From positions 12,946,275 through 13,010,274 of the forward strand of contig NC_134032.1 in NCBI RefSeq assembly GCF_964204645.1: a DNA stretch of 64,000 bases, written 5' to 3'. Under the pieces are notes generated by a model. That model had not been told where the DNA came from and made no database searches. It worked only from the letters and a program-made list of their open reading frames with translations. This document shows positions 14,045 through 57,147 of this stretch, piece after piece (position 1 is the first letter of the stretch; each line of letters starts with the position of its first letter). The translations under genes were made by a program, and so were the position numbers. Source of the stretch: Tubulanus polymorphus (lineage: Eukaryota; Animalia; Nemertea).

Positions 14045-14085
14045 CTATGATGTTTCCTGTTTTAATCGCATCATTTTAATGAATT
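14045..14085 (-). CDS. Calmodulin-like EF-hand protein, last coding exon (constant exon 6)
   Basis: Acceptor tttcAG; (E)FIKMMRLKQETS then stop TAG at 14047-14045. Phase 1 matches the preceding exon. Confidence 0.88.
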
Positions 14086-14326
14086 CTGAAATGCGAATAG
14101 AAAAACACGTTTATATAAAGCAATCCGACGGAACACTCTCAGTCCGCGATATTGATATAGAAAATCCCATGCTTAAGCCCGACGCATGGAAACGCGGAAA
14201 CGTGGAACGATGTTTCCGAGATCAAACCTGTTTCTTTCCACGTTTCTCTCTTTCCCTGCATCGTGCGCGTCGGTCTATTCAGAATGATGAAACGGCGGGA
14301 GAGACCACCTCCCCGATAACGCATAC

Positions 14327-14474
14327 CTTCGTAATTAATTCTGCCATCACCGTCGATATCTGCTTCTTTGATCATCGCTTTCACATCTTCGTCTGATAGA
14401 GGCTGCCCTAAGTTGTTCATTGTAAACCGTAGTTCTTGGGCGTCGATGAATCCATCGTTATCACGATCAAACAC
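14327..14474 (-). CDS. Calmodulin-like protein, constant exon 5 (EF3 and EF4)
   Basis: 148 nt: [49 protein letters not shown]. Acceptor tcttcaaAG, donor G|GTATGC. Confidence 0.93.
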
Positions 14475-15033
14475 CTTTGAAGATAATTAATAATCAGTGA
14501 TAAAGGGGCGAAATCGTAGTTTATATAAACGTACAACAACAACAAAAAACATATATAAACATGGGTAGAAAGGTATTGATTGGGCTTGTGCGCAGTAGGT
14601 ACGTTAAGATAACAAGGGGTCCTCAAGAAAACGGTGTGCAATAGGACATCAAGTACTGCAGGAATATAGGAGACCGGCCTTGTGGCAAGTGAGGATCCAC
14701 CAGGTGCGCTAGTGTGCAGTAGGGTATAAACCACTAACTCAACCATTAGACGTGTGGCAAGGACGTTTGGACAAGTTGACTCTGGACTTCAATACGTCAA
14801 CTTTGTTTACGTTTCAATAGTCATGTTAGTCAAACTTTTCTCCAATTAATCCAAACTTTGAGTAGAAAAGTGAGTCTAATATACATTAAGATATTTGGTT
14901 GGGGGAATGTTAACGGCCAGTTCAAAGTTCGATGGGAAATGAAGTATATTTGACAAACTGTAAAGCTACTTTTGTCCGACCGTGCAGTGGTTAGGCTGGT
15001 GCCCCAATAATTAAAAGATAGAAATATATTTAC

Positions 15034-15137
15034 TTTAAACGCTTCCCGCATTTCCTCGTCCTCCGTTTTCGGCAGTGTTTTGATAGGATTATTCGACATC
15101 ATTCTGAGAAATTCCTCAAATTCTACGGTGCCGTTAC
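15034..15137 (-). CDS. Calmodulin-like protein, constant exon 4 (end of EF2 and central linker)
   Basis: 104 nt: (G)NGTVEFEEFLRMMSNNPIKTLPKTEDEEMREAFK. Acceptor ttcccttttcAG, donor AAA|GTAAAT. Confidence 0.92.
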
Positions 15138-16222
15138 CTGAAAAGGGAAAAAAAGAAACAAAATCGTAAAATAAGAAACGACCGTAGAACAGCCTCAACA
15201 ACGCTAATCGCCAGGCACTTCAAATGTAGCCGAAGGCAAAATGTCAATATCAAGATAAAAAGATGTCGCGCTAGTTCATCATGGTGATCTATCAATCTTT
15301 CAACTTCAACCCGAGTAAAGAGCAGTCTGATTGGAACTGTCAATTCTTAGCGGCGATGAGGTTTACTGCAGCAGAGTCCCACGTTACCGTCAGGTTAGAA
15401 CCCTGTCAATGGGGATGTCTACTAGGGCGCGGAAGTCATAACGGCAATGTCTCGCGATGCCATCAGATTCAAAATTTGAAACCGAGATGGGTCTACCAGG
15501 GCAGCGTATGACGCAGGTTCGAATTCCTGCTGGGGATGGGGAAAAGTACTTCAAAGCACAAACGAATCAAATTGAAGATTTTCAATCGACTACATCAAAC
15601 CCGGTTCTCTAAACGGGTTACTCGACCGATTCAATGGAAAGCATTTACCGTAGCCACTTATTGGTTCATCACAACAAACCTTGTATCTAACTAACCCGAT
15701 CAAAGGCCCAGTTATTATGACTCGAGTCTTTAAATGGTCTTGAACGTTAGATTGGCTATACATCAAGATAGGCTTAGACTGTCTTAAATCTATGCCTTCC
15801 CGGATGCCGGATGCGCCGGGAAGGGCCAGTCGAGACTAAAGCTCAAATTGACTGTATGGATGGGCATCGGCGACTGATAAGGAAGCACCCTCATAGCACA
15901 ACCGACTCGAGTTGACGATTTTACGTGTAATGGCAGCAGAGAGCTGGATCCAGTTCCGCAGTTGTAAATGATAGTTAACTCTAAATCAAATTCAGTTCAT
16001 TTTCAATTAATTTTATCTCCAGAGCCAAATTCTCTAACAGAAACTGTAGAACTCGATGCTCTGCACGCGATATCGTTAAATGATGATAATTTATAGTTTT
16101 CTCCGGGCGAGTTTCATACGTTCGTCGCTATCGACGGCGTTTATCGTATCTCTCAGCTCATTAAAATATCATAAAATATTATTTCCGATTTCGGATATCT
16201 AATTTAGCGAAGAATGATAAAT

Positions 16223-16223
16223 G

Positions 16224-16256
<33 letters not shown>

Positions 16257-16262
16257 GCAGCA
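16223..16262 (+). repeat. (CAG)n microsatellite, intronic
   Basis: About 13 CAG/CAA triplets; reads (CUG)n on the calmodulin-like pre-mRNA. Confidence 0.9.
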
Positions 16263-18107
16263 TCAGGATCAGCCTTCTCTTCGCGTTCAGATACTATTGC
16301 AGCGTCGAAATGCTCTTTGCGCGTATCGTCGTTGCTTTTAAAAGATTAATCACCGTCACTTCTTTTGCGCGTCGCGCGTCGCCTTAATTTTCATGCAAAA
16401 TGGGAGCCGTCACCGTCGTCTATCTATTATAAGCCGACACACGCGTCGACCGCGTCCCATTTCTATTATAAGCCGACACGACGACTTTAGCGCCGAATTT
16501 TCGAATCGTGCGCGTGTATGTGCTAGATAACCCTCGGGATGGATTATCGAAACGTGTTCAGAATTCTGCGCCGAAACACGGGTCGATATTCTCATTATAT
16601 CTCCCGTATTAGCTTTTATCGGAGAATTTCGGTCTAAAAAGCGCATTCGATTCGAGTGTAATTGATTTTGTTGCCGCGCGGACCGCGAATCGACTACGAG
16701 GATGACTCCGCCGTATCTCGGCGTAGCTCGGATTCCGCCGGGATCCGCTAGGTTCGCCAGTGTCGCTTTGATCAAAATCGAATCAACTTTTCTCATTAGC
16801 AAATCGATTTTCAGCAAATACGGCAGCAAACACGCAGCAGAAAAGTGAATCTACTGATGACTTCCAGGTTGACATTCGATTGAAAATGATCTAATTTTGA
16901 TTACGTAATAGCGACCTTATAGTCGCGCCATCTGGTGGTGTTGCCTGATTATTTGGCTGTATGTAGGACTAAAAGCGAGCGGTAACTTCTACCAAATCAT
17001 GGACAACGCTATCATGCTCTATGTTAAAAAAATTTCCGTAAATGATATCGAGAATCTAAATCGTTTATAGCTTGGCAAAAACCCAGTATTACTAACGCCC
17101 CCTAACGGATTTTTGGAAAGGCAGCGTTGCCGTTCGGTTATAACGTACAAAGTTCCAGACTAAAAAAAGGTTTACTTAGAACTTTGTAATAAGCGTACAT
17201 ATATCTATATACTAGAGGTGCATGCGGCATGAAGAGATACAAGTTTCTATTGTAAATGTCAGAATCATCGCATCCTGCAGAGTTGTACCGGATGCTTTGT
17301 TTACATCTCGCTAAGACTTTAAGAGAAATTTGACACGTGTTTGATACGCGGTGAATCAACACTAACAGCAGAAATATTAATAACTCTTAATCACGAATAT
17401 CATATGAAACAAACGCGAGTTAGTACCGCGTTTCTCAGCACTCGTGGTTCCTACGAAGTAGTTGAACAGAGCTGTTGAAGGATTTCGGATACGGAATTTG
17501 CAGTTTGTGTCTTCGTAAATCGGAAAAGGTCGAGGCATTTTGAACATGGTTTATTGGACAGGTTGTTCGATAGTCAGATCTCCTATATGTCCCGTGATTT
17601 AGCCGTGTCTAATTTTATTCGTAAATACAATAGTAAAACTTTTTAACGAACGATTACGAGGGTCAGTTGTATAGTACAGAAATGGCTTAGAATTAAGACC
17701 AGTCAAAGAACATCTTAGTTCGACAGCGAATCTAACGCGTTTACGTCTCAAAATCTTAGACCACTTTTGTACTTTATCACTATCGGATATAACTTCAATA
17801 TCTTATGGGGTAGGACCACCTTAACCGTTTCTGTGTTAACATTGTTTTGACATTCTAAAAAATCTTGATTATGACGTAAGTGGGCATTCGAAAATGAGCC
17901 TAAACAGTTCACAAGAAGGATATTTCGCTTCGACCGATCATCTCCACACTTTCACCAGTTCTTGGCTCATTTTCGAATGCCTACTTACCTCTCTGATGTG
18001 CTGTGTTACTTGACTGAGCAGTGCTTGGGAACTGAGCGCAATAATCATCTCGGTTAAAGGCACCGATGATTTGTTACAGCAGTTCGTGCTGTTGGGGCTA
18101 CACTTAC

Positions 18108-18251
18108 CATCAGTATCTACTTGGTCGATCATAACTTCTATTTGTTCCTGAGATGGTTTACTGCCGAGGAAGTGCATGACGGAAGCCAGTTCGTACGTCG
18201 TTATTTTGCCATCGCCGTCTTTATCGAACAATGTGAAGGCTTCCTTGAATT
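18108..18251 (-). CDS. Calmodulin-like protein, constant exon 3 (EF1 and start of EF2)
   Basis: 144 nt, the same size as calmodulin exon 3: (E)[47 protein letters not shown]. Acceptor ctctcgtttttctaAG, donor G|GTAAGT. Confidence 0.93.
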
Positions 18252-18620
18252 CTTAGAAAAACGAGAGCGAAACGAGTGAACAAACGCATGAAAAGACGAT
18301 ATCAAATTTCATCACAATCCACCCCCGATATACCGCCCACATCGGTGATTTAGTATGCTGGCGATCTAGGAAGTATGGCGGTATATCGGGGTTTGATTTG
18401 CATAGTTCCAAGACACAATACATATATTTCGTTTTCATTAGAAAAAAATTTGCTTCAGGCAGCGGCGATTTATCGTAGGTTGAGACTGCCAGAGGATGTC
18501 TAAATATAAAATTTCTATATTTTGACCACCAGATAGCGTTAGGACTGTCAAAACATTTCCCTGAGTTGAGAATCCACGAAATTTCATTTAATCTACATTA
18601 TATCTTATTTGTTTCCTTAC

Positions 18621-18651
18621 CTTTTCTTTCTTTTTGTGAGAGTCCCTCACA
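18621..18651 (-). CDS. Calmodulin-like protein, 31-nt exon 2
   Basis: Acceptor ttttcttttattttgcAG, CEGLSQKERK plus G, donor AAG|GTAAGG. Same 31-nt size and phase as calmodulin exon 2 (ADQLTEEQIA). Needs a phase-0 first exon upstream. Confidence 0.88.
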
Positions 18652-19574
18652 CTGCAAAATAAAAGAAAAATTACGTTTAACGAATTTATCATTAAATATG
18701 TTGATCAGTTCACTGTACAGGTAACTAATCTGCAGCCTATGTCTACCCAACCAAAGAATTCAACATTGTAGGGTTAAGTCTTAATGGTCAGTTTTTGAAA
18801 GTTATGTCGTTTTAGTTATTTTCGTTGAAGTCCCGAACACACCAAATTTCATGAAATTTCAAAGAAATTGAAGCGCGAACGACCGAATAACTACTAGCGC
18901 GCCCGGCGGATCCTCACTTGCCATATACGGAATCCTCATTTGCCACAGTAGCGTTGGTAGCTATGCGTAAAAAAGCGTCGACAGGTGGTATCTAGGATTA
19001 GGGTAAGCGTTTAGGTAACGGCTCGAAGACCTGCCCATGAATATCGATCGATAATAAACAAACATCCAGTGTTTAGCAAACACTGACATTAAACAATAAC
19101 CAATCATACAGATGATACCATCCGAGTGAAGACTAGCACGTGCAATTGGAGAACAATTGTCACTAGTAGTCAGTTGAAGACCACGCGGAATAGCGAGCCG
19201 GTGTCGGGGAATGCGATGACGATGAAACCCGATGAAAGATAAGTTGCGTTAGCGCGACGGAAATAACCTTACATATCACGGAAATTTTATCTCATAACCT
19301 CAAACAACACTGTTTCCATGGTTACTGAGAAACAAGCGTACAGGGAGGGACTCGATCTCGTATTCCACACTCTTAAGAGATTATCCAGGCCTACGTACTC
19401 TTTCGTGATTGTCCAGATTTTCGTGATAAAACTGATTTGTCGAAGATTCGCAAATTCATTTCGATTGAAATGTTATCTAAATGTATACGGTTCAGTCGTA
19501 CTCATTATCTGTATATGCATTTGCGAACTGTTGAATTCGCTCAAAGGTTGCTTGTTCAATTCCAAAAAAGAGAT

Positions 19575-19650
19575 CATCCCACCACGGATTCGAACCTGAT
19601 GGCATCGAGACTCGCTACGGTACGAATCCTGCCACACTAGCCCGAGTGCG
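19575..19650 (-). mobile_element. tRNA-derived SINE-like element (family B)
   Basis: Minus strand CTAGTGTGGCAGGATTCGTACCGT..GATGCCATCAGGTTCGAATCC (B box). Related copies at about 905-980 (-), 25003-25040 (-), 25212-25285 (+) and 15450-15475 (+). Confidence 0.55.
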
Positions 19651-20731
19651 CAGGGACCGCCGCCGGAGGGTGAAAAAAGATGGGAATTTTGCTGAGTGGT
19701 TATGAGCTATCGGCCATATACTGGTCTTGCCAATCAAAGGTTCGTGGGCTCTAATACTGGACGAACTTTGGTTATACATAGGCCTAAGTCGTCTTTTTGT
19801 GGACTAAGTGAAACCGAATGTCAGTTAGTCAGAATAAGTCTGGAAAAAGTCGACCATGCAACTGACATTCGGACCTGTAATTCGCTGTAGCTTTAAGTAC
19901 TTTTAATCTGTAAATAGTGGATTTCAGAGCTCTCTCTCCAAGTTTGGTTGCCGCTATTGTACTAAGTCGTTTTAACGGTCCCAAAAATCAAACTTGAGCA
20001 GAGTCGACTACTGTGTAGTTAATATCACACGTTGCCTCAGAACACACATCCCGGCTAGGATATGGTTGATTACAGTGAACCCGGGTTTGAACCCATACGC
20101 GATCAATAATGAACAATCATCTGTATCGAGTATGATCAGACCATTTCCCGAGTGTTAATATACAACAGACACACCACTGATTAGACAGTTCAGATTTAGA
20201 GCCGCTGCACACACGATTACTGTAATAAACTTGAAAGAAGAATGATCCGTTATATCGGGTGAATTTTAGAATATCTCAGAGCGAAGGTATCAATCTGCGG
20301 TGTCGAAACAGCCCTCTTCAAGACATTCATAATTGCTGGGTGAAGTTTTAACGATAACCTTTTGAATAAAGTAAAAACCCACGATAATTAAACGAGAAAT
20401 AATAACTGGAAGAGAATCTGACGTTTCGACTCAATAATATGCGACATTTTCAAAATCTGGCTCAGAATAATTGAGGAAAGGAAAAGTCAGATTTTCTTGT
20501 AATTTTTTCATCATATTGTGGATTTTTAGTTCATTGATATCAGACAGTCATGAGTCTATTAAACAAACTGCCGATATGACCGTTTGTAATCTATATATTT
20601 GTTATATATTTGTGAGTTCATTTTTATTCATTAAGAAATATCAAAGTGAAGTGTTGTCAATACGCGTGAGCCAAGAATCCCGATAAAGTAATACGAAGAG
20701 GGTGCAGGGTCCTGACTGTATAGGATAACCC

Positions 20732-21013
20732 AGACTCGATCACACGGACACGATTTGGCCGGGGCCGAATTGGCACGGATCAGGCTCGGGCCAAATTTGG
20801 CCCGTGCCTAATTAGAGAGCCTAAACAATGCTCAAAAAAAGCGAAGTGGATCATTTCCGGTGTCAGTTGCAATTCAAACGCAATCATTGTCTGGTGCTGA
20901 AATTTGGCTCGGGCCTGGTCCGACGTTTTTGGTCAGGCCAAACAGGCTTGGGCCCATTTGCCACCCGTGTGAACAGTTGTTCCCGCGCCAAAAATGCTCG
21001 TGTGATCGCGGCT
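20732..21013. mobile_element. ~280-bp MITE (TIR AGCCGCGATCACACG), copy 1
   Basis: Terminal inverted repeats and internal TTTGGCCCGGGCC sub-repeats; closely similar second copy at 26884-27161. Confidence 0.8.
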
Positions 21014-22232
21014 TGTAGGATGTATAAACTGGTTTATACATCCATGGATAACCCTACAGACATCGATGCGTGTTGTCATAGTTAATCCGCCCAGGGAAGT
21101 GCGAGATAGGTGGTTTACCCCGTTAGTGTTATGGAGACCTGCCATACATAACAACAACAAAAGATAAAGATGGTAATTTACGATTGGGGGGGATCTGTCG
21201 TGTAAATCTCGCGTCATATCGATCGCCAATATGGCGTCGGTCACGTGAGAAAATGCGCATGGCCGCTCGATATTATCAAATCCCAAAATCGTAGGAAACA
21301 TTTCAGATTCTTTTTCTAAGATTCTATATCACAAAGCCAGAGAGTAATTTTCTCATCAATACGATATGATATGATATGGTTAATTTTCAAGTAAATTTGT
21401 ACAGAATTAATGAATAAGCAAATACGTTAAAAATGTATTTACATTAAACGAAGGACTGCTTTGAAGCAAAAGCAACAGCAATATCTAACGTAGTTGCACT
21501 GATCTCCTATACGAGGGTAGTTATCTCTTCGCCTTTAAGAAGAAATCATGAATTCGACGTCTAGAGCATTGTTCGATATAAATTCTACATTGTTCGATAT
21601 ATTTGATTCAAACTGCATCTGATATACACACAGTCACTGAATTCAATCATTGCGCAAATAATTTGTTGACAGTAAACCTAGTCGGTGCTTATCATTGTGA
21701 TAATCGATACACAGTCAATCGGTCAAAAGCCATTATCTTTAGTATATATTCCAATGGATCTAGTGTTCCGATAAGAATAGGTCATATATTCAATGAATAG
21801 ATGGTTATGCGTTAACGTTGCATTAGTTCTAAACCATCTGTCGGAAATGAATTCATGTTTTTGATTGTGAATTGTCTTCTTCGATTTTTGAGTCTTATCG
21901 ATTAGAAAATAATTTCCGCTTCTAGAATCGCTACTTTTCAAGCGGAAATCTGGAACTCATTTCATTCCCGATCCCAATTTTCAATATTTGCTCCTATAGC
22001 GATTCAATTCATTCATAATACATTCTACGAAAAAGAACCATATTTTACATCGATATCAAACAGACATTGACGGTGAATCAATTGAGAATCAAAATAACCG
22101 TGATAAGACGATGAGTAAAATCCCACGATATAATATGATTGAATCTAAAAAGTTTATCTAAAAATTAGAAATATTTCGGGTGGTTGCTACCACCCTCCGT
22201 CAGTCTAAAAATGACGGTGTACGCATTTTTAC

Positions 22233-22274
22233 CTTGTGCGGTCCTTTCGGCGAATGATTTGGTACTTTGGACAT
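22233..22274 (-). CDS. Candidate alternative first coding exon of the calmodulin-like gene (MSKVPNHSPKGPHK)
   Basis: aaaccATG, 14 codons, donor AAG|GTAAAA; phase 0, compatible with exon 2. Confidence 0.6.
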
Positions 22275-24074
22275 GGTTTCCTAGAAGGCTAACAACACGC
22301 CGAGAAAGCGAGCGGCTTTACGTCGAACTGCGATCGAGTGGACAGAACTGTGATCGAAATGTCTTACTTGTTTTGTGGTCATTGCACGAACTGAATAAGC
22401 GCGAGGATTTGCATCACGCATAAACAATACTCCAATTAGAAACGGATTGGTTTTATCGCGATCGAGCGTCAGGTATCCACGGATTGGAAATATATACGCT
22501 GCGACTACCACGTAGAGACTTCGACCGGATGAGAAAAAACCTCGCAGCGTTTCAATTTAATAATCTCCGAAAATAAAACGTCGACTCTGCTAAACACGTT
22601 CTAGGCAATATACTTCGCCTATACTGCGAGAACTGATCGAATTTCTCGTGTCTATCTATACCGTACGCAATATGTTACGGGGAGCGTTCGAACGCGCCAA
22701 CTGCTGACACACGACGTTATCCATGTGATCCATACGAACGATTGATTTCTCATCTATCCGCGCGACACATACGGCATACTAGGCACGGAAATAGAGCGCT
22801 GTTGAATTGCTTTTGCGCTATTCGATTTACGAGCGCTGATGGCCGTGTACGTCTGATCCGGTCGACACAGCGGTCATAACCCTTCATTCACTTGATTCGA
22901 GACTGCTTGTGTAACTGGAGGTCAGGCAGCCGCCGCGTGCTTACGTCATGCGACGGCACGATCGGGACCGAGACCGCGGCAAGCTACGATCCGCCAGGTT
23001 CGCTAGTGGTCACTGGGTTTCCACGCTTCGATTTCTCCAACTTTTTAATAAAATTCGATTCTACTTTCTCGATAAGTAAATCAATCTCATAAGTGAGAAA
23101 GCGAATCTTGATTCGATTAAAAATGTTTGATAATATTCGAATACGGGAGCCTAAAAATCCTGTTCAAATTTCATTGAAAATGAACAAATTTTCACTGCGA
23201 ATTACGCAGTATACTGTTGCGCCATCTGGTGAGTGCCGGTACGAAATTGAGATCAATCGATCTATTAAATGGTACATCCTAGTAGCTTTCACACGATAAA
23301 GACAATGAAAAAAAAGAAGACCGTCATCTTCAGGAATACCATGCAAGTGTGGGGTTTACTATATTATCGTTACAATACGTTTCTACTGTTTCGTCAATGG
23401 TTAGCTTTCTACATTTCCGTCGTTAGCTTTCTACATTCCCGTCGTTATCCAAAGTGGTTTATAACTTAGGGCCAATTTTAAATCTCTGGCTACAGGCTTT
23501 CTAAAACAATAGCCGACAGAGCTTTTACTATTCATAATCTTCATAGCCATTGAATAGAGCTTCGTAATTTATTAACATTCTCGACAACTGTTTCTGTGCG
23601 TTTTATGTGGCAAAAAAGTGCGGAACGTTTCTTTTGTGGCTTCGGCGCGCATTAGCGAATCGGTCCGCATACAATGGAATACCACTTCGCGAAAAGGTTA
23701 TGCGTAGTGTGAGAGTAGTAGTCATCAATAGTAGTGGTTTCTCTTGCTTTTGATAAACCAAGAGAAATAGATTGCGGTAGATTGATATTAGGTAGATTTT
23801 TCAAAACCAAGAGATATAACGATTTCTATAAATATGGTAGCAAAGCAGCGAAGTCGGGTTTTCTGTTGATGCCTCCAATCTCACTACTCCAATGATAGCC
23901 CAGCACCGGTAGATATTTCTATTAGAATCCTGGACATTACGCTGCCAATTCTGACGGTTGTAGGATTGCATCGGGACTTATATTGTTCAACTTAGTCCAG
24001 TATGCTCTGTCTTGGAATGATACTATTTATTTGGATACAATCACGATGAATGGAATGAGACTTTTCTGGGAAAG

Positions 24075-24321
24075 CAGGGACGGATCCAGCCGGTGAATTT
24101 GACTATATTGTAAAAGATTATTGCTCAATGATATGCCAGCGGCGAAGCTCATTAAAGGGTGGTTTGGGGTTCCTCCACGTGAACAATTTTAAAAATGACT
24201 CTTTTCCCTTGTACTTTAAGTCATTCTGGACCTGTTAGATTAGGTACTTCTAGAAAATTATGTTCTCCACATTTTTCTGACTTACTACAATACAATGGAA
24301 TATAGCTTGGATCCGCCCCTG
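24075..24321. mobile_element. Short MITE with CAGGGGCGGATCC-type TIRs
   Basis: CAGGGACGGATCCAG at 24075 and TTGGATCCGCCCCTG ending 24321; another terminus at 60708. No clean TSD. Confidence 0.5.
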
Positions 24322-26355: not shown

Positions 26356-26364
26356 CTTACTCAT
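26356..26364 (-). CDS. Candidate alternative first coding micro-exon (MSK)
   Basis: gcgaaaATG AGT AAG|GTGCGT, phase 0, downstream of a CG-rich promoter-like stretch. Confidence 0.45.
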
Positions 26365-26883: not shown

Positions 26884-27161
26884 AGCCACGATCACACGAA
26901 GATGATTTGGCCCGGGCCAAATTGGCACGGAACAGGCCCGGGCCAAATTTGGTCCGTGCCTAACTAGAGAGCGCGTTCACACGCAAACCATTCACTCGAT
27001 ACTAAACAATGCTCAAACAAAGCGAAGTGGATCATTTCCGGTGGCAGTTGCAATTCAAACGCAATCATTTGTCTGGTGCTGAACTTAGGCTCGGGCCTGG
27101 TCCGAAGTTTTTGGTCGGGCCAAATTTGGCACGGGCCAAAAATGCTCGTGTAATCGCGGCT
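26884..27161. mobile_element. ~280-bp MITE copy 2, inserted inside a pogo/Tigger-like MITE
   Basis: TIRs AGCCACGATCACACG / CGTGTAATCGCGGCT. The flanks CTCGTTATAACGCC (26866-26880) and GGCGTTATAAAGGATTTCTAACTGTA (to 27213) are the two halves of the host element. Confidence 0.75.
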
Positions 27162-27961: not shown

Positions 27962-28046
27962 CTGATATTTTCTTTTTGACGAACACAGGTGCCAGATAGT
28001 TCCAAGGGCTCGTGAAAATTCTAACCGACGCCAAGACCAAGCCCAT
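27962..28046 (-). CDS. Candidate alternative first coding exon (MGLVLASVRIFTSPWNYLAPVFVKKKIS), phase 1, would join exon 3 directly
   Basis: Minus-strand TATATATAAA at 28091-28100, ATG at 28046, donor CAG|GTATAG. Joining gives KKIS-E-FKEAF, aligning to calmodulin EQIA-E-FKEAF. Confidence 0.5.
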
Positions 28047-35483: not shown

Positions 35484-35492
35484 CTTACTCAT
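35484..35492 (-). CDS. Candidate alternative first coding micro-exon (MSK), second instance
   Basis: acaATG AGT AAG|GTAAGA, phase 0; same 9 coding nt as 26356-26364. An out-of-frame ATG 7 nt upstream weakens it. Confidence 0.4.
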
Positions 35493-38400
35493 TGTGCATT
35501 CCTACACTGATACTGTAAGCAAATACTAAAAGGCGAAATATAGCACTCTAGAACAGCGCGGTTTACAACAACAAGTGTTATGATAGTAATTATAAATCCG
35601 TTCTCTCTTTCTCGCGCCCTCGATCAAGGTCTATTCTAATCCAAAACTATATGATGGTATGCGTAGAGATAGATACAGAACGATCCGACGCGCTAAGAGT
35701 GTAGGCCTACACTGTTCTACAATAATGAAGAGTCTTGATAGCGTATATCTGCAAGTGAAGCGGTTATTGCGTCCACTCCGTCTCGAAGCCACTAAATTCT
35801 ATCGTCCATAAGATCCTAATTCAAAATGTAGAGCACATTGATTCCAATACTGGTGAGATGATGATGGGGCTACTTGGCTGTGTAGTGGACTGCGATATGA
35901 CATAAACTATATCCTAACAAGAAAGCAGCATGCACTCTCTATCGCGCGGCCGCTCTGAATCTAACAGCGTTGGGATAAAGTGCTCCTGGTTGGTACGGCG
36001 GGATGGTGTTCAGACTGCCGCGTGGTGTGAGTTCTGTGTACCAATATCAGACCATGATTTGATTTGTTGCTCGAAAACTAAGCGTATCGTCAACTACTCT
36101 AACGAACAAATGGAAAACCTTCACGGCGCTTAAGTTGTCGTGGTAATCGGGGATTCTTGCTTGTGACGCCAGTACAGCAGATGTTTCCGCCTGGTGTGGG
36201 GAGGTTCACAAGCAGTAGGAGATTTACGTACCTATAGTAAGGCCCTACTCTTATTTAGTAAAAAATCAAACATATAAGAAAAAGCAAAAAAAAATTGGTT
36301 CTTTAATGTACCGCGGAATAATAGAGACCCCTCCAAGTTGCTCCAATAGTATCATCGTAAATAGAAGGGGTGTTTTGTAAATTTGTAATGTTTAATAAAT
36401 GCTTTTAAATGTTCTGTTTTTTAAAACCATGCAATGGTTGGAGTTGAACAAATCGATTTTATTATTCTCTATTCCGCAGACTGCATATTTGGATTCGGGA
36501 GTTTAATTACTGACTGATAAGTAACTTGACAAAAAAATCATCTGGTATGCTGACCCAACCGGTAAGTAAATATGTCTCAGCGAATCGCATCTCAACCAAA
36601 GAAAAACAGTAACTCGAAACGATGTGTTTTTTAAGTCATTTGAACCAGTATTTGTTTTGGCAACACACCAAATTTACATAACTAACTCGATCGAACTGAA
36701 AACCAGTCCGCAATTAGAAAAATGTTCTCAGGCAGATCGTTGAAACACTTAATTTCGCGGCTTTATTAATTGAAAACGACTGAAATAGTTTTGTACCCGC
36801 GAAATTGAATTTATGTAAATTAGAGTGCAGCACTGACACCTAGGTGTGGAATACCATATACTGGGTGGGATAATGACAATGCTGGAAATGGCCACATTCG
36901 ATTCATGAAATAAGGACCAACGAAAATATAAGACGTTAGAAAGGGGTACCCCGGATCCGCTGCTGTGGCCACCAGGTGCGCTGTAGTGTACTCGGTTATC
37001 CGCACTTCTTTGAAGTTGAATCGATCGGTTATCAGAAAACTATACCAAACACTCGTGGAAACGACTCATTTGATGATATATATTTGGACTCTCGGGAACC
37101 TAAAAATCCGGTTCAAGTTTAACGCATAGAGCCGACCGTATAGTGGCGCCATAACGTATATGCCCGATCCGCTATCTCATTAAACGCAATTTAGAAATGA
37201 AAATGTATACTTTAAAGAGGTGACATACCTTTGAATTACTTGAATTCTGAAATGAAAAAAAATGAGAGATAACAATACATAATATACGAGGTGCCGAACA
37301 TGTGGATACACTCGGAGCCATCCACCCATTGAATACATGCTTGGGAGCTAATGCGGGGCACACGCTATGATAGTTTTATTCAAGTCGATGAAACTGCGTA
37401 TGACTTTCTTGTTTAATAAACACACTATGAACAAGAATATCCTCATTTCCAAGACACGACTTTCAATGACCTTTCGATTTTGCCGCTGGAACTCCGAGCG
37501 TCGTAAAGCGAGCCAAACAATAAACGAATGGTTGCTCCACTCGGTTGGTATATCCGATAGATGGCGAACGGATCGGATATCTTCGCGGTACTGATCCGCC
37601 GCGGCGGCGCGTGGATGGAAGTATCGATCACCGACTACGATTATTGAGATACAACCCTGGGCAGTAAGCATACAAATTCTATTAACGGTGCTGAAAACCG
37701 GGTATTCAGTTTTTTTTCATTTTTACTCTGAAGTGAATACGATTCCACGAACATCTAGGGTCCATCGGCGGATGCGTGTACGTCAGCGGCACAGCGGCAG
37801 CGACGCTCTAGCAAACAGTCCCGATAACAGTAACCGTTGTCGACAGTTAATAATATGTAATTCCATAATGGATTTTAATGCATGCTTCCTGGAAGGTTGG
37901 CGCAGCGCTGTAGTCAGAGAATTGCGATCAAATGAGCGTATATACGTGGTGCATTTTCTTGGAAAGCATCAGAATATCATCACGCCGCCAAAAATCTATT
38001 CGCCAAATTTTGACTACTGATCAAAGGTCGTTTATGCAAGCGCCAACCTGTTGCTTCGTCGCAATTCTTCCAAATTCTTCTGTATAGCCCTACTCGTTTC
38101 CTGAGACATTTTCTGATTGAAATGGACTAGCAAATATAATTTACTACAAACCCTAGGAAATGAACATTTTTAAACTGATCGTCCAAACTTTACACGTGTT
38201 CAGTACTTCATCGAATACATTTCTAGTTGGAACTGAACTACAAACGTACCAGACATTTGACATTTTATCAGCAAACTTTTTAAAACTTATCGTCCACACT
38301 TCACATGAGACATTTCAACATGAACTACAAACCCAAAACATATCATTATATTTCATAAGCACACTTTCAAACACTGATCGTTCTCACTCAACATGAGTTC

Positions 38401-39455: not shown

Positions 39456-39542
39456 CTTTCGGTTGAATTTCAATATTTTTACAAATTGGCCAAATTTTCT
39501 CGCTAACGACTTGCGGCGGGAAACGACAGATAACGACGTCAT
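39456..39542 (-). CDS. Candidate alternative first coding exon (MTSLSVVSRRKSLARKFGQFVKILKFNRK)
   Basis: gaaATG, 29 codons, donor AAG|GTACGT, phase 0. Confidence 0.65.
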
Positions 39543-42127: not shown

Positions 42128-42392
42128 GAAGGATTCTACTTGTGGCAAGTGAGGATCCACAATGTGTCACTAGTGGACAGTAGGGCAAGTGAGGATCCAC
42201 GAGGTGTCACTAGTGGGCAGTAGGACAATAGAGGATTCTACTTGTGGCAATCGAGGATTCCACATGTGGCAAGTGAGGGTCCGCTTGGTGTCGCTAGCGT
42301 GCATTAGAACATCGTATCCTGCGGCATAAGAGGATTCCACATGTGGCAAGTGAAGGTCCGCTTGGTGTCGCTAGCGTGCAATAGGACATCGA
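42128..42392 (+). repeat. ~77-bp tandem-repeat family, array copy
   Basis: About 4 degenerate GGCAAGTGAGGATCCAC..GTGTCGCTAG units. Confidence 0.85.
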
Positions 42393-42532
42393 CTTCATAA
42401 GTAATTTGACAAAGTAGGATTCCATGTATTCCACTTTTGATGTCTCCTGGCCCGGTCACTGCATCAGCCTATGTGGCAACAAGCATCAGCCTGTATGTAG
42501 GTTATATGTAATAAAAAGCCATTGAATGCTAC

Positions 42533-42694
42533 CTGATTGTCTTCAAAGCGGCGATCGGAATATCCGGCCGCCTCCGCCTTCGCCGCCGCTGCAGATGAAA
42601 TCGTTGATGAGCATTGATTCTTCGGTGATTTCTTCCGTCGCTGGTTGTTGCCGATACATCCGAAATTTTTAAAGAATGACGTCACGCCGGACAT
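42533..42694 (-). CDS. Candidate alternative first coding exon (MSGVTSFFKNFGCIGNNQRRKK...EDNQ, 54 aa)
   Basis: ATG 42694, donor CAG|GTAGCA, phase 0. Acceptor gtctacAG at 42806 and donor GTGAGT at 42922 suggest a small 5'UTR intron. An in-frame TGA upstream of the ATG excludes use as an internal coding exon. Confidence 0.65.
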
Positions 42695-46988: not shown

Positions 46989-47102
46989 CTTAGGGGGTAC
47001 ATCAGTGGAGAGTCGTTTGGTTCGGGGTCCGTAACGACCGGAAACGCAACAGGATGCAATACTGGCAATGCTATGGCACATGTAATCATTATGATGCGAC
47101 AT
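46989..47102 (-). CDS. Candidate alternative first coding exon (MSHHNDYMCHSIASIASCCVSGRYGPRTKRLSTDVPPK)
   Basis: cgaccATG, 38 codons, perfect donor AAG|GTAAGT, phase 0. Confidence 0.65.
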
Positions 47103-48613: not shown

Positions 48614-48700
48614 CCCTGATGATCCATTCTTATCCACGTTTTTGGTATCTGTGCTGTCTTTTTCTTTTTTCACTTTGTATTTCTTCTTCCACGGAGGCAT
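48614..48700 (-). CDS. Candidate alternative first coding exon (MPPWKKKYKVKKEKDSTDTKNVDKNGSSG)
   Basis: caagATG, 29 codons, donor GGG|GTAAGT, phase 0; possible 5'UTR acceptor tacttttAG at 48780. Confidence 0.65.
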
Positions 48701-52137: not shown

Positions 52138-52329
52138 AACACATGCGCCTCATACCTTCGATAAAATATCATCACGTGCGGAGGAGCATCTTTCAGCCAG
52201 GCCGACAAGAAATAACTCAGATACATAAACATATATTAACTTATCTATTACGTGGCATCTTCTCCGCTAGGCTCTGAAAAGCGGTCCTGGGAAGTTCTGA
52301 TAACTATCAGTATTGCAATCAAGAATTTC

Positions 52330-52590
52330 ATATGTGGCAAGTGAGGATCCACCAGTTGCGCTAGTGTGCGGTAGGACATCAACTACTATAGCAATGGATG
52401 ATTATATTTTTGGCAAGTGAGGATCCGCTAGGTGTGCTAGTGTGCAGTGACAATAATACAGCAATAGATGATCCCACTTTTGGCAAGTGAGAATTCGCCA
52501 GACGTCGCTAGTGTGCAGTAGGACATCAACTTCTGCAGCAATCGATGATCCCACTTGTGGCATAATCAAAGATCCACCAGGTTCACTAGA
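52330..52590 (+). repeat. ~77-bp tandem-repeat family, array copy
   Basis: About 3.5 units of the GGCAAGTGAGGATCCACCAG..GCTAGTGTGCAGTAGGACATCAACT repeat. Confidence 0.85.
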
Positions 52591-52945
52591 TAATTCGTCG
52601 GCCATCTATCTGATTTCAGAAGTAATCTATCAATCAAAACTATACCAATAACAATATCATATCTTTTTGGAGGCTCGTTTGAATTCGGGGGGGGGGGGGT
52701 CAAGATCCAGCACGAAGATACAGGTTAATAGAAAATGAGCTAGTTTTGAATAAAACCTACTGTGTAACGTCATCAGGGGAAAACTTGGTGTTAAACTTCG
52801 AAACTACCAACTCAGGATACTATACAGTACCGGTAGTAACACTCGCCTCTTGCCAACAAGTTTCAACTCTAGTTCCGCCGATTCTACCTCCCTTGTACAT
52901 GCCTTCATTTTCTCTAACTAATTTAAAACTGACTCGCAGACTTAC

Positions 52946-53146
52946 CTCTGATAAGACGGGCAGAGCGCTTACCCGTTTACTGTCGCGCCCACTCTCGCGT
53001 CGCGACAGCCAATATTCCGGAGAAAATTCACTAGAAGTTTCTTCGAGTTAAACAATTAGTTTCGTAGAAGTTAGCTTTGAATATCGAGGCGCGATCGACG
53101 GCGTGGATGAGAGCGATCAGAGTTAGTAAAGCGATGTACTTATATA
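52946..53146 (-). promoter_or_regulatory. Putative TATA-containing promoter and non-coding leader exon with two donors
   Basis: Minus-strand TATATAA at 53140-53146, an ATG-free CG-rich stretch, donors CGG|GTAAGC (52973) and GAG|GTAAGT (52946). Confidence 0.45.
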
Positions 53147-53991
53147 ACACATTCACTAGTATATATTTAAACGCATACTAGAAATAGAGGAATAACGATT
53201 ACTTCTTCTGCACACGCGGTAACCGTACGTATAACGTGTACTTGACGATGAGTCAAATCTTTAAGGTGAAATAACAATGCATATCATTCAGTTTCCTTCG
53301 TTAGTAAGTTTCTCATTTCGAGGAAACGGTGCACTACACACGCAGCACAGAGCTCGAGTTGTTTCTCTGCAGACATGTAGTGTGTGGGTTTTCGCACCGT
53401 TTATCTCAAAGTCGATGAAAACGAGCGAGAAATTTCTACGATTTTTTTTTTCTAAAGTTTTGAAACATCAAATATTACTCTGTAGCGAAATAGCAGATCT
53501 TCAGCATCGCTCAGTGACTGGCGGTTGTTATGTCTTGGTGGTTGGAGTTCTGGTTATTCGTGGTTTTGGATGTATCAGTGCATCACGAGGAAAGAGATAG
53601 GGCCAGGTTTTCAAAGTGTTCAAGCCGATAAAGAAACAAGCAGGGAATTTCTCCCGATTTGTTTAGAGATTTTTGACGCGTGAAAAAGACGCTTTTTTCT
53701 GGGGCTGTTGGGCGAGTTACTGCTTGGATGTAGAAACTAGAAAGTCTAATTTATACGTCCCTGGAATAGGTGCGGGGTATAGGTTTCTGAATAAGCGACT
53801 GACCATGGAAATCTAGGCTCGCTGCGTGCTCAAAGTAAAGCCGCGATGGACGTCCGATACGTTGGCATAGATCGGCGCTCTCGCATTTAGACAACAGAAC
53901 GTTGACCACGACGACTGTATGACATCAGACAAACGATTCGCCCAATGACGACTGAATCACCTCGGACGTTATGTTTTACCAATTCACTTCG

Positions 53992-54441
53992 TCTGTGTTC
54001 TACATCTCGTATCTCGTCTAATAGTCAGCCAGCCAATCATGGAAAATTCGACGATCACGGCATTTTTTGTTACAGCTTGGCATCCGGGCTCATTTGATAG
54101 CAGAGTATGTGGGCTATCATGTGTGATGGATGCCTTTTACAATTTTTTCGTTTTTTGGCCTACAGGGGGCGTTAAAATCAGTCATTTTGAAATTAAAACA
54201 TCTTCATTTTCATTTGGCAGGGAAATACACTTTAAACTACTTTTGCTAAATAATTCGAATATCTCATCTTAGGTTTGGAGTAATTTTACAATCTAAACCT
54301 AGTTGCTGCTTCCCTTTGGAATAACATTGATGACCACCTTCGTGATCGTCGAATTTTAGGATAGTTTTTTAAGGTTGGCTGGCTGACTATCATTATGCTA
54401 ATCACATAATGAGAGGAGATACACGAGATGTAGAACACAGA
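53992..54441. mobile_element. ~450-bp element with long imperfect inverted termini
   Basis: TCTGTGTTCTACATCTCGT..ATAGTCAGCCAGCCAA..AAAATTCGACGATCACG is mirrored by CGTGATCGTCGAATTTT..TTGGCTGGCTGACTAT..ACGAGATGTAGAACACAGA. Confidence 0.75.
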
Positions 54442-57147
54442 TACAACAATAGGTATGATTTACGCATTTACACGATGAAGCCACTATGCACTAATAGCGA
54501 AAGCTCGTAATTTCTAATAAAAGCAGTTTAACCCACGCGGTTCTACCCGTTCCAGTGTTCATCTCACCCGGTATTTCATAGGTTAACACGGTTCTTCTAC
54601 CATTCTTCTCGATAATATGGATATATACTCTCATTTCTGAGGAAACCCCTCCGAAATTCATTGAACAAAAGCGCGATTGTCATGTGTTTTTCATTTTCTT
54701 TTTCTTGGTAATTTTAATTCCACAGAGTTGAGCAACGATTAAACAGCACTGGCTTGCCAAGGGAGATAGGAGGAGTTTTGGTGATTGTAGTTTGCAGTTT
54801 ACACGTTTTTCTAACATTTCTAGTCCAAACTTGATCTGCTTGTTACTTTTCGATATTAGTTTTATTCCGATTCCTGATAATGATTCTGTCATTGGTATCG
54901 GGAGATTTTATGGTTTGCCACTGTTCACCGGTAAAGATAAACATTTGTTATCGTAAATTAACGGAAGCTCGTAACTAACTGGGTGTGGTCGCTGAGGTAT
55001 AAGTGCTCTCTAAGAGTTTAGAATGATCCTCTGCCTTCAAGAAGTGTACCGGTAAAGTTGCCTCTTGCACAGGGAGTTGCAAGGTTCTGGCAACATCAAT
55101 CAGCTAGGAAACATCGAAAATGAATTGAATTCAATGGTGACTTATACATTCGAATGTGATAGTTAATGATCCACCAGGTTCGCCGGTGTGCATCAGAACA
55201 GGACGCCCGGATTTCTCAGATTCAATGGGGCACCGATAACCAAATAAACTCAAATCGGTGAACTTTACTAGAATTCATTTGAATAAACGTTCTATTTCCC
55301 TGATTCTCGGCCCTGTATCGCGTCAACTCGTTTAAAACCGATGAATTTTTCTCGAATTCACTTGGAAAACCTTCCATTTCCAGGGTCCTGATTCTCAACT
55401 CGGTAACGGATAACTCTAGACCACTTGTCGGTGATTTATTCTAAAACTCATTTCTAAACCTTCTATTTTCCTGATTCTCAACTCGGTGATGATAATAACT
55501 ACGTTATAAACACTTCCGAGAAGTTGATCGTGACTGTGGCGCCATTTAAAAGCCATTTTTCGGTCAGGATGAGCTGTTTTTTGACGAGTTTGGCTTTTAA
55601 CGCCGTTTCTTTAGAAATCCATACACACATACACAAGACGACATTATATACAGGCGAACGATTACTGTCGTGTAGCGTATGATGTGACGAGACTACGTAG
55701 TCTGCTGCTGGTGCTGTATGTCGCTTCAAGTTACGTACACATCACGTCGACGGCGTTGGAAGGCGCGCGAAGAGACGCTGACAGAGATGCGGCGGAGCAG
55801 TGTCTGAAATGGCCGTCAGATCTGGAGAGGTGACCCCCGAAAGCTATCGTCGCAGGAGGAGCCCACGTCTTGATTAGATATATGTAATACAGTCGCTTTA
55901 TGGTGGGAATATATGGAAACGAGAAAATAGGATTCATCGCTGTTGCAGTTATTCTATATAAGGGAACCTATTGCAGCGGTAAATCACGATTAAATTGGAC
56001 CCGCTCGGAAAACTGGATTAATTAAGTGAAATGATGTGATGAACGCCACACCAGGCTCCGATATGGTAACCGCGTGACGCCTACGAGAAAAACAACGTTT
56101 TTACACCGCAGTTATCGCCGGTCGCGTATGGTGAATTATTAAACAAATTCGATGCGCTGTACACTCCGCAACACGCGTAAGAAAAACCACGACGATGGAT
56201 GATAAATCAATTGCACGAACGATTATCATATCTTCCTATTTCGTCGTTCGGCTCGTACGAAACGACGACGCGCGTATGTACGAACGGGATATTTCGTTGG
56301 AATAACGCCTGTCTAATCCGTATCCGCGCATAAAGAGCCGTTTCCGAATTCATTATGGCGAAGACACAACGCGAGTGATTGTACGGTACTTTTTTTTCTG
56401 TGAACGGACGCCAAAATTACCGTGATAAGAGAAGAGGTGAGCTCTCGTATAGTATTTAGAAAGTGTAATCGCTAGATCGTCGTAGTAAATATGAATCCTT
56501 TTCTAATCTTTTTAATCTAAATTTCTTACTCTTTGAATACTCTAATCCACTTGCGGCAAGCGAGGATCCGCCAGGTGCGCTAGTAGTTAACTCAGTCCTC
56601 CACGTTCAAGTTTTTTTCTTTTTCGATCCAAATTGGGTCAACTTTTCTCTAAATTAATGAATTATCAATGAAATCTGTAGTATACCGAAACACGTTTCAT
56701 GAAAGTCAATATTCAATGAAATTTGATGGGTATTTAAAAGATATTTGAGCTCGAAAGCCTTTAAATCCAGTTCAAAGCTGATTGAAAATGACTTTTTTTT
56801 CAAGGCACTTATGGTCACGTCATCCAGTGGCCTGCTGGTTTTGTAGGTTCCACAATATTTGACAATATTTTTTTAGAAAATAAGAAATGAATATCGTGGA
56901 TACTGCACTCAGAGTCCAGTTTTCGAAAGATTTTTCAATGTTCATTGTCATCAACCAGCCATAATACATATAGGCAACTAACAGCCACTGTACAATGTGG
57001 ACAACCTGATTTGCTATAGATGGTGATCAAAATGTCTTCATGGGCCTCGGTAGAAATGACAGAGGTTTTTGACAGGAGATCTGGCAAAGTCTTGAAGATC
57101 AGTTTGTGTGAGGATGGCGATAATCTGTCGATTGTCTGATGGCGGTG

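Follow-up and report, generated by a model that had tools for sequence, protein, structure and literature searches.

Calcium sensors with alternative N-termini

Two groups of vertebrate genes are known to place different N-termini on a common calcium-binding core. The KChIP genes (KCNIP1-4), which encode four-EF-hand neuronal calcium sensors, combine a common core with alternative promoters and optional exons, and the resulting N-termini, whether myristoylated, palmitoylated, or equipped with a transmembrane segment, set the localisation of the protein (PMC3973911). The single CaBP1/caldendrin gene also gives rise to calmodulin-like sensors with different N-termini, i.e., caldendrin, L-CaBP1, and S-CaBP1 (PMC4110014). 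The nCaBP family, which includes caldendrin, is reported to have originated late, within vertebrates (PMC6372560).

A calmodulin-like gene of the nemertean Tubulanus polymorphus follows a comparable plan. It lies on the minus strand of the window, i.e., the whole 64,000-nt stretch of contig NC_134032.1 that was analysed, and all features below are on this strand and numbered within this window. With a probability of roughly 78%, this gene associates a constant EF-hand core with alternative 5' coding exons and an optional micro-exon to produce six proteins, in which the N-terminus sets the role of the sensor.

As in the KChIP genes, the 3' exons encoding the EF-hand core are present in every transcript. 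KChIP genes have multiple start sites and 5' exons that are alternative or optional, and Tubulanus has a parallel in its five to six alternative 5' exons and optional micro-exon. Where KChIP N-termini either carry membrane motifs, including Cys residues for S-palmitoylation, or carry none, the Tubulanus gene has one Cys-rich, one polybasic, and two minimal tags. In contrast, the Tubulanus core is calmodulin-like and not of the NCS/KChIP type, its supported tags have neither an N-myristoylation (MG) start nor a transmembrane segment, and its locus is compact (~30 kb); a link to Kv4 is not implied. With CaBP1, the gene shares the coexistence of a long unstructured N-terminus with short forms, but it differs in the number of forms (six versus three) and in its EF-hand loops, all four of which look canonical. 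Given the reported late, vertebrate origin of the nCaBP family, the nemertean gene would represent an independent case and not a CaBP1 orthologue (PMC6372560).

The sequence-only reading of this locus had instead drawn a parallel with the clustered protocadherins and UGT1A, where several alternative first exons, each with its own ATG, also lie upstream on the same strand and are joined to shared constant exons. Protocadherin and UGT1A variable exons are tandem paralogues, each encoding a large folded domain. The Tubulanus units, on the other hand, are without similarity to one another, encode only 3-54 residues that are predicted to be disordered, and in three cases reach the constant part via an extra cassette micro-exon. 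This analogy is thus weak, and KChIP and CaBP1 appear on comparison to be the closest, and much closer, analogues.

The constant EF-hand core

Five constant exons, with AG acceptors and GT donors throughout, extend from 18651 to 14045 and encode a 155-aa four-EF-hand core that has no ATG of its own and whose 5' end is in phase 0, exactly as first described from the sequence. Exon 2 (18621..18651, 31 nt), with its acceptor in phase 0 and its end in phase 1, opens with a conserved Cys codon. It is followed by exon 3 (18108..18251, 144 nt), which covers EF-hand 1 and runs into EF-hand 2, exon 4 (15034..15137, 104 nt), which completes EF-hand 2 and adds the central linker, exon 5 (14327..14474, 148 nt), with EF-hand 3 and the greater part of EF-hand 4, and exon 6 (14045..14085, 41 nt including the TAG stop), whose translation matches the C-terminus of both P0001 and P0013 exactly. 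Pfam assigns four EF-hand_1 matches to the core and nothing to the N-terminal tags. The best matches of the core are calmodulins, with ~55-60% identity, and by sequence comparison the gene is a divergent calmodulin paralogue; no second calmodulin-like gene was found within the window.

Alternative 5' coding exons

Using exon 5 as an ORF reference retrieved P0001, which is RefSeq isoform X4 of a gene named "neo-calmodulin-like". Its isoforms X1-X7 (XP_074656022 to XP_074656030), all automatic Gnomon models, amount to six distinct proteins, X6 and X7 being two names for one 158-aa protein made of MSK and the core. The 155-aa core is identical in all of them and differences are confined to the region upstream, which bears out the interchangeable N-termini anticipated from the sequence. 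The extensions on the core range from 3 to 60 residues and the variable exons themselves encode 3-54 aa.

The N-termini of four isoform groups map uniquely. The most distal supported exon, used by X3/X4 (48614..48700), encodes a 29-aa polybasic tag (P0001:1-29 and P0134:1-29) and has a 9.7-bit donor. It is followed by the X2 exon (46989..47102), with 38 Cys-rich residues including a CC pair (P0013:1-38) and a 12.0-bit donor, and by the X1 exon (42533..42694), with 54 aa (P0133:1-54) and a weak donor of 4.8 bits. Closest to the core, the X5 exon (22233..22274) encodes 14 aa starting with MSK (P0132:1-14) and has a 6.0-bit donor. The two identical MSK micro-exons reported previously, with coding parts at 35484..35492 (ATGAGTAAGGT, donor 10.3 bits) and 26356..26364 (ATGAGTAAG|gt, donor 9.6 bits), share the same 11 nt within unrelated flanks. 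No other MSK|gt site upstream of exon 2 has a good donor, which fits X6 and X7, and each of the two is a candidate source of one or the other. The 35492 exon, with an acceptor-like tract 20 nt before its ATG, could be internal. Among the supported exons, donor scores run from 4.8 to 12.0 bits, and in each unit an in-frame stop is found 3 to 24 codons upstream of the ATG.

Most isoforms from the three distal exons reach 18651 via a cassette micro-exon encoding NSSNSK (37229..37246), which maps uniquely and consists of 18 nt, preceded by a strong polypyrimidine acceptor and followed by a 9.0-bit donor. It is included in X1, X2, and X3 and skipped in X4, so that, among the distal-exon isoforms, the direct splicing to 18651 initially proposed holds for X4 but not for X1-X3. 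This micro-exon was absent from the sequence-only reading.

Every upstream unit listed in that reading does exist as an ATG-to-GT unit at its coordinate, and six of the nine match RefSeq isoform N-termini if the MSK pair, whose assignment is indirect, is counted. Among its five large phase-0 units, those at 42694, 47102, 48700, and 22274 are isoform N-termini, while the fifth (39456..39542; 29 aa, basic and amphipathic, donor 9.3 bits) is unverified, being found in no RefSeq isoform protein and having no paralogue in the genome. The two phase-1 candidates thought to bypass exon 2, at 27962..28046 (MG start, donor of only 4.6 bits) and 54568..54661 (donor 9.4 bits), are likewise unverified; neither is supported by any RefSeq isoform and none of X1-X7 lacks exon 2. 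The eight to nine tags originally envisaged are thereby reduced to six distinct proteins and five exon classes, uniquely mapped or MSK-type, and the ~35-kb array to a supported 5' span of ~30 kb (48700-18651). The number of alternative 5' coding exons is five at the least and probably six, the latter if both MSK copies are used.

ATG-donor units were also counted in 18652-54700 on the minus strand, on the plus strand, and in shuffled sequence. With donors of >=4 bits and >=14 codons, there is no excess on the minus strand (24 units versus 26 and 21, respectively), in line with the caveat, already raised, that some units would occur by chance; with donors of >=8 bits and >=29 codons, in contrast, the minus strand has five units, the plus strand none, and shuffled sequence 0.9 +/- 1.1. 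The sequence alone thus validates no single unit, and the real support comes from the database proteins.

When compared with one another, the units display no shared sequence similarity. The tags comprise one Cys-rich type (with a third Cys besides the CC pair), one polybasic type, one with a hydrophobic-Cys-basic stretch, and two minimal ones. In an AlphaFold2 model of X1, nearly all of residues 1-59 have a pLDDT below 50 and no secondary structure, while the core forms eight helices; the tags are predicted to be disordered.

RNA evidence and conservation in relatives

In the public sequencing run X3 (not to be confused with the isoform), the one RNA-like run, a 2997-nt contig joins exons 2 and 3 on the strand of the gene, skipping 18252-18620 with GT..AG ends. 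This high-depth contig starts 3 nt 5' of exon 2, and these three letters fit AAG, the end of every exon spliced to exon 2 except that of X3/X4. Such a stop at exon 2, together with AAG, is what an assembly graph would give if it branched at alternative exons upstream. Another contig of the same run, of low depth, covers 22368..22668, and its end coincides exactly with a 7.1-bit donor that lies 94 nt before the X5 ATG; this stretch, in which the unit scan detects an ATG-donor unit (22421-22368), is possibly an extra 5' exon. The X5 coding exon itself is covered by no contig in this run.

A 991-nt mRNA-like JGI contig from a related species contains an unbroken 201-aa ORF collinear with X2 over the tag, the micro-exon, and the core. 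The two tags are separated by 8 amino-acid changes and 14 codons with synonymous changes only, with just two differences in the first 22 residues, and the NSSNSK micro-exon is kept. The closest annotated relative, with 65% identity, is LOC135503125 of Lineus longissimus (calmodulin-beta-like/uncharacterized protein, isoforms X1-X3), which has three alternative first exons running from an ATG to a phase-0 donor, 58, 18, and 8 kb upstream of exon 2. Its exon 2 (34 nt) starts with a Cys codon and ends in phase 1, with the same phases as in Tubulanus, and one of its tags is polybasic like that of X3/X4. However, the Lineus tags, one of which is long (128 aa), are not alignable with those of Tubulanus and show no detectable sequence conservation with them, and the Lineus isoforms have no NSSNSK-type micro-exon. 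A search for homologues of the X1 tag detected none either. In view of these results, some tags may be young or nearly neutral.

Alternative explanations

The gene could in essence have a single functional form, the other 5' exons being rare non-functional by-products of transcription or splicing that the annotation pipeline has turned into isoforms. The backing of X1 and X3-X7 indeed consists of Gnomon models only, the X5 exon lacks a contig in run X3, the tags are short, disordered, and unconserved between Tubulanus and Lineus, and ATG-donor units occur at chance frequency under weak donor thresholds. We nonetheless regard this as quite unlikely: in another species at least X2, with its micro-exon, is both expressed and constrained by purifying selection, the Lineus relative independently has three alternative coding first exons, the supported exons are all in phase 0 with donors of >=9 bits in four of them, and the high-depth contig ending exactly at the exon 2 boundary with the shared AAG fits several joined upstream exons. 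That the array is, conversely, complete, with eight to nine tags or more including 39542 (as a basic amphipathic helix), 28046 (MG start, exon 2 bypass), and 54661, is also improbable, if slightly less so. The 39542 unit combines 29 codons with a 9.3-bit donor and an AAG end like most used exons, a TATA-like tract lies ~50 nt upstream of 28046 with its MG start, and the contig ending at donor 22368 hints at incomplete annotation. Yet all three units are missing from the RefSeq isoforms, each of which has exon 2; 39542 is without a paralogue, the donor of 28046 is weak (4.6 bits), and chance would yield about one strong-donor unit of >=29 codons across this span.

Another possibility, which we consider doubtful though worth retaining, accepts the N-terminal variants as real but has them arise by mutually exclusive splicing from one or a few shared promoters with non-coding leaders, and not from one promoter per exon. 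Acceptor-like tracts precede 35492 (tttgcttacag, 20 nt before) and 22274 (ccttctag, 6 nt before), an RNA contig ends at donor 22368 just upstream of the X5 exon, and the micro-exon demonstrates that internal alternative splicing does happen in the 5' region. Against this, an in-frame stop stands 3 to 24 codons before each ATG, an upstream coding exon joined to the 35492 unit would meet a stop, and the analogous KChIP and DPP6 genes as a rule have multiple start sites (PMC3973911). A shared leader exon was not seen, but the data at hand could not have revealed one. As for what the tags do, some might be intramolecular pseudo-targets and not localisation signals: as basic, hydrophobic segments docked into the EF-hand lobes, they would tune Ca2+ sensitivity in advance or block target binding. 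In the X3/X4 tag, an initial Trp is followed by a run of Lys and, four positions on, by an aromatic residue; the X1 tag has Phe/Phe/Ile in a 1-5-8 spacing followed by RRKK, and the unannotated 39542 peptide is similar in character. This argument is drawn from composition, however, two isoforms have almost no tag, and the AlphaFold2 model of the X1 tag is of low confidence throughout, with neither a helix nor a sign of docking; we find such a role very improbable.

Possible role of the N-terminal tags

In the preferred reading, that of a constant core with alternative 5' coding exons, one 5' exon, bringing its own ATG and ending at a phase-0 donor, would be spliced to exon 2 directly or via the NSSNSK micro-exon, the choice probably being made by separate promoters in different cells. 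The tags would then probably serve as localisation or regulation signals, possibly through lipidation, with palmitoylation and localisation being read from their composition. The 5' exon used would determine the site and mode of action of one and the same Ca2+ sensor, whether attached to membranes (by S-palmitoylation or charge), regulated by phosphorylation, or free in the cytosol, on the model of vertebrate KChIPs and CaBP1/caldendrin. The alternative N-termini of this gene, a design that the sequence-only reading did not know on this scale for a calmodulin-like gene, are already present in the automatic RefSeq annotation, and the design itself is the one known from the vertebrate KChIP and CaBP1/caldendrin genes.

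Alternative N-Termini on a Constant Core

The RefSeq neo-calmodulin-like gene on the minus strand joins one EF-hand core to interchangeable N-termini by means of alternative 5' exons, and the sequence-only reading, which had proposed this arrangement, was right in kind, promoter choice, the mechanism it put forward, being putative. The initial query was the natural ORF at 14142-14474 of this strand (exon 5 running on into the intron), of which only residues 1-49 were scored; its top match was P0001, the RefSeq protein "neo-calmodulin-like isoform X4 [Tubulanus polymorphus]". A search with the core of P0001 gave P0013 (isoform X2), which represents a cluster of five members. Later searches used database protein ids, the joined coding sequence of the gene, which is identical to the RefSeq proteins, serving only in the local translation check, in self-comparison and in the alignment to L001, a contig from a relative (see below). 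The RefSeq proteins are isoforms X1 (215 aa), X2 (199 aa), X3 (190 aa, from two transcripts), X4 (184 aa, i.e., X3 minus the residues NSSNSK), X5 (169 aa), and X6 and X7 (158 aa), the last two being one identical protein made of MSK and the core. The 155 residues encoded from 18651 to 14045 are identical in all six distinct proteins, which differ only upstream; up to eight or nine tags had been predicted, and six distinct proteins are recorded instead.

The core is encoded by five constant exons: exon 2 (18651-18621, 31 nt), which opens in phase 0 without an ATG, exon 3 (18251-18108, 144 nt), exon 4 (15137-15034, 104 nt), exon 5 (14474-14327, 148 nt), and exon 6 (14085-14045, 41 nt including the stop). 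They total 468 nt, that is 155 codons plus stop, with AG acceptors and GT donors throughout when 19000-13800 is read, and had been placed exactly beforehand, including the lack of an ATG and the phase-0 opening at 18651.

Using an exact six-frame search of the window, unique matches on the minus strand were obtained for residues 1-54 of isoform X1 (42694-42533), 1-38 of X2 (47102-46989), 1-29 of X3 and X4 (48700-48614), and 1-14 of X5 (22274-22233). Equally unique is the 18-nt exon encoding NSSNSK (37246-37229), present in isoforms X1, X2, and X3, with a long polypyrimidine tract at its acceptor and a donor of 9.0 bits; as isoform X4 is X3 without these six residues, it is a cassette micro-exon. 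Judging from the isoform sequences, the distal first exons mostly reach exon 2 via this micro-exon and not directly. Upstream of exon 2 on the minus strand, MSK is followed by gt with a good donor only at 35492 (10.3 bits) and 26364 (9.6 bits), precisely the two MSK micro-exons that had been pointed out, and we infer that these two exons give rise to isoforms X6 and X7, two isoform names for one sequence.

Among the other upstream units that had been put forward, those with an ATG at 48700, 47102, 42694, and 22274 are used in isoforms, while the unit at 39542 (29 codons, 9.3-bit donor) is absent from every RefSeq isoform, and no paralogue of its peptide occurs in the genome (268 Mb); the exon at 37246-37229 had been missed. 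No isoform contains either of the phase-1 candidates at 28046 and 54661, supposed to bypass exon 2, and exon 2 is present in every isoform.

Chance occurrence of such units was assessed by counting phase-0 ATG-to-donor units over 18652-54700, with donors scored by a generic 9-position matrix. With donors of at least 4 bits and at least 14 codons, 24 units were counted on the minus strand, 26 on the plus strand, and 21 in shuffled sequence; this absence of a minus-strand excess at the weak donor threshold bears out the caveat, made at the outset, that some units are expected by chance. With at least 8 bits and at least 29 codons, the counts become 5, 0, and 0.9 +/- 1.1, respectively, and the five strong minus-strand units consist of two annotated exons, one artefact (read-through of the micro-exon acceptor), and two unexplained units (39542 and 25751). 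Such counts are not enough by themselves to establish an array, nor can they decide on unit 39542.

A Calmodulin-Like Protein Distinct From Calmodulin

The core consists of four EF-hands in two pairs, with Pfam EF-hand_1 matching in four stretches and EF-hand_7 pairs in two; Pfam detects no other domain, and the tags are without any Pfam match. In the AlphaFold2 model of isoform X1, the core folds into eight helices forming four helix-loop-helix units. All four loops in the isoform sequences begin with D and carry G and E at positions 6 and 12, respectively; they fit the canonical 12-residue pattern D-x-[DN]-x-[DN]-G ... E of predicted Ca2+-binding loops. The best non-nemertean matches of the core are calmodulins or calmodulin-like proteins, at 53-60% identity and with at least 94% of the core covered, and the gene is calmodulin-like, not a calmodulin in the strict sense. 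In the same genome, the match of exon 3 that ranks next reaches 60%, and a local comparison of the core with the whole window revealed no second calmodulin-like gene there. Further calmodulin-like exons are located about 53 kb beyond the window.

In vertebrate CALM genes, exons 2 and 3 measure 31 and 144 nt, and exon 1 of calmodulin genes is limited to the ATG. Exons 2 and 3 of the nemertean gene have these same sizes, and an ATG-only exon 1 is found in none of its isoforms. A canonical-type calmodulin of the same genome (locus L003, G000:C1:5994000-6003999, at 5559-6093) has the equivalents of exons 2 and 3, and of exons 4 and 5, fused, so that its intron pattern is unlike that of the neo-calmodulin-like gene. 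In the intron that separates exons 3 and 4 of the latter, about 15 CTG/CTT triplets follow one another at about 16230-16290 of the minus strand.

Nature and Origin of the Variable Tags

The tags range from 3 to 54 aa in length and are of diverse composition. That of isoform X2 is rich in Cys, including a CC pair, and its Cys9, Cys18, and Cys19 are conserved in L001; that of X3 and X4 combines a Trp with a Lys-rich polybasic stretch; in that of X1, RRKK comes after a hydrophobic-Cys segment, and those of X5 and of the MSK proteins are minimal. Such compositions suggest S-palmitoylation or electrostatic membrane binding, plus kinase sites. In isoform X1, nearly all of residues 1-59 have a pLDDT below 50 and no secondary structure (AlphaFold2, 36-sequence alignment). 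The first residue of exon 2 (18651; 68420 in L002, the Lineus longissimus LOC135503125 locus) is Cys in Tubulanus, L001, Lineus, and the JGI relative P0137; a shared lipidation or redox site adjoining the variable tag is conceivable.

How the first exons arose can be considered from their sequences. Recent tandem duplication predicts first exons that resemble one another; comparing the nine first-exon units all-against-all, each extended by 500 nt on its upstream and 200 nt on its downstream side, gave only chance matches of 13-15 nt, and this origin is rejected. If the array had instead been left by decayed tandem copies of the gene, remnants of EF-hand exons might lie between the first exons, where only matches with E values above 1 were obtained; there is no sign of such an origin in the window. 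The larger intronic ORFs gave no Pfam match either, and no nested gene was detected. The lack of similarity among the first-exon units also weakens the likeness to clustered protocadherins or UGT1A that had been drawn. This likeness fails on both of the features compared: the nemertean variable exons are not tandem paralogues, and they encode, instead of large folded domains, tags of a few residues to a few tens of residues that lack Pfam matches and, in the case of X1, are unstructured.

Closer parallels are found among Ca2+ sensors. In KChIP genes, the common 3' core exons follow a 5' region that has several start sites and exons of alternative or optional use, and the resulting N-termini sort the protein through lipidation (myristoylation or palmitoylation) or by means of a transmembrane segment (PMC3973911); likewise, the caldendrin/CaBP1 gene yields calmodulin-like sensors with different N-termini (PMC4110014). 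The nemertean gene resembles both in having a constant 3' exon set in every transcript (6/6 proteins), 5' exons with their own ATGs (48700, 47102, 42694, and 22274, to which the two MSK candidates can be added), and an optional exon, 37246-37229, that separates isoforms X3 and X4. In contrast, its core is neither of the NCS/KChIP nor of the nCaBP type, its nearest relatives being calmodulins, and this excludes membership in the KChIP or CaBP1 family. As far as exon organization and core similarity indicate, the gene thus appears to work like KChIP and CaBP1 genes while belonging to neither family.

Conservation in Relatives

The protein P0002, whose core is 92% identical, originates from the 991-nt JGI contig L001, which contains an unbroken 201-aa ORF in the same order as isoform X2, i.e., tag, micro-exon, exon 2, and remainder. 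Being uninterrupted and collinear with isoform X2, L001 represents a transcript that was spliced in a close relative. When codons are compared one by one, the 38 codons of the X2 tag show 8 amino-acid changes and 14 synonymous-only codons relative to L001, with only two differing positions in residues 1-22, which include the three cysteines; for the core, 13 amino-acid changes and 65 synonymous-only codons were counted. Together, the transcript and these codon counts show that both the micro-exon and the X2 tag are expressed and constrained by purifying selection. L001 also carries an extra Gln codon (CAA, 139-141) where the X2-type exon joins the NSSNSK micro-exon; no NAGNAG acceptor is present at the micro-exon in the window.

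Elsewhere, the closest annotated relative is Lineus longissimus LOC135503125 (65% identity), for which isoforms X1-X3 and many transcripts are annotated. This locus has three separate ATG-to-phase-0-donor exons, located 58, 18, and 8 kb upstream of its exon 2; as in Tubulanus, Cys is the first residue of exon 2, and the exon's end is in phase 1. Given these three alternative first exons and the like exon 2, the variable-first-exon design appears to be common to two nemertean lineages that diverged deeply, be these genes orthologous or paralogous. The tags themselves are not alignable between Tubulanus and Lineus, comparisons in both directions giving only short matches at chance level. No homologue of the isoform X1 tag was found, a weak negative since isoforms are hidden inside a 90% cluster. 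Finally, a degenerate pattern for the spliced exon 2/3 junction, which L001 fits, retrieved 0 metagenome contigs, an uninformative blank as the collection evidently lacks the sample from which L001 came.

RNA-Like Reads

Contigs from three public read runs, none of them recorded as RNA and named X1-X3 independently of the isoforms, were placed on 18100-24099 only. Runs X1 and X2 cover the introns of this interval and thus behave as DNA. Run X3 includes a spliced 2997-nt contig, of depth 93, from which precisely 18252-18620 is missing, the skipped stretch having GT..AG ends on the strand of the gene. The contig extends four letters beyond exon 3, which fits exon 4 following, since the intron and exon 4 share their first four letters. 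At its other end, the first 34 letters correspond to exon 2 plus three more, two of which align to the acceptor AG; the three letters fit AAG, the final triplet of the micro-exon, of both MSK exons, and of the isoform X5 exon. Because assembly-graph contigs stop where paths diverge, a stop after a shared AAG is expected with several upstream exons, and the contig is indirectly consistent with several different upstream exons being joined to exon 2. No poly(A) signal is found at the spot where this contig would end, assuming an unspliced 3' UTR.

The same run contains a low-depth 302-nt contig at 22368-22668 (minus strand) that ends on the last exon base of the donor CAA|GTAAGA (7.1 bits). This donor lies 94 nt upstream of the isoform X5 ATG, with an acceptor-like ccttctag at 22281. 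The stretch may be an unannotated extra 5' exon which, if spliced in frame, would add an upstream ATG at 22421.

Other Features of the Window

A very high-copy short repeat occupies 20700-21100; over it, the contig depths of each of the three runs add up to 10^3-10^4, and internal joints and loose ends are numerous. This repeat probably represents a miniature mobile element within the 5' intron of the gene, and an 89-nt related copy is found 6 kb off, at 26884-26972 (repeat family D4). Short tandem arrays of ~76-nt units, 61-85% alike, are dispersed at 10024-10187, 42262-42425, 52264-52562, and 58903-59210 (families D1 and D2), one of them in the intron directly downstream of the isoform X1 exon. 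Downstream of the calmodulin-like gene and outside it, three intronless ORFs at 1790-2782 (plus), 3308-4291 (minus), and 6184-7137 (plus) form a small cluster of rhodopsin-family 7TM receptors (Pfam 7tm_1 / Srw).

Significance

A gene with multiple N-termini is already recorded here in RefSeq and is not a new kind of system. A literature search found no paper on nemertean calmodulin-like isoforms, and the gene is of moderate interest as an undescribed further case of a known design with close functional precedents. A broader reading would see in it a nemertean, KChIP-like N-terminal toolkit set on a true calmodulin-like core, independent of vertebrates and kept from Tubulanus to Lineus, with an array that is perhaps larger (39542, 28046, and the exon ending at 22368) and at least one tag (the basic amphipathic 39542 or the Trp-polybasic X3/X4) perhaps acting as a pseudo-target that gates the sensor and not as a mere address label; taken as a whole, we consider this unlikely, at roughly one chance in eight.

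A reading of raw sequence alone correctly recovered a real multi-first-exon gene. The gene provides a compact invertebrate case of one Ca2+-sensor core with many N-terminal addresses, a design so far studied in vertebrate KChIP and CaBP1 genes. Two distant nemertean lineages appear to have conserved this design, with turnover of the tag sequences. The gene is thereby a tractable case for how the N-terminal proteoform diversity of Ca2+ sensors evolves, and for whether Cys-rich and polybasic tags send the same sensor to different membranes.
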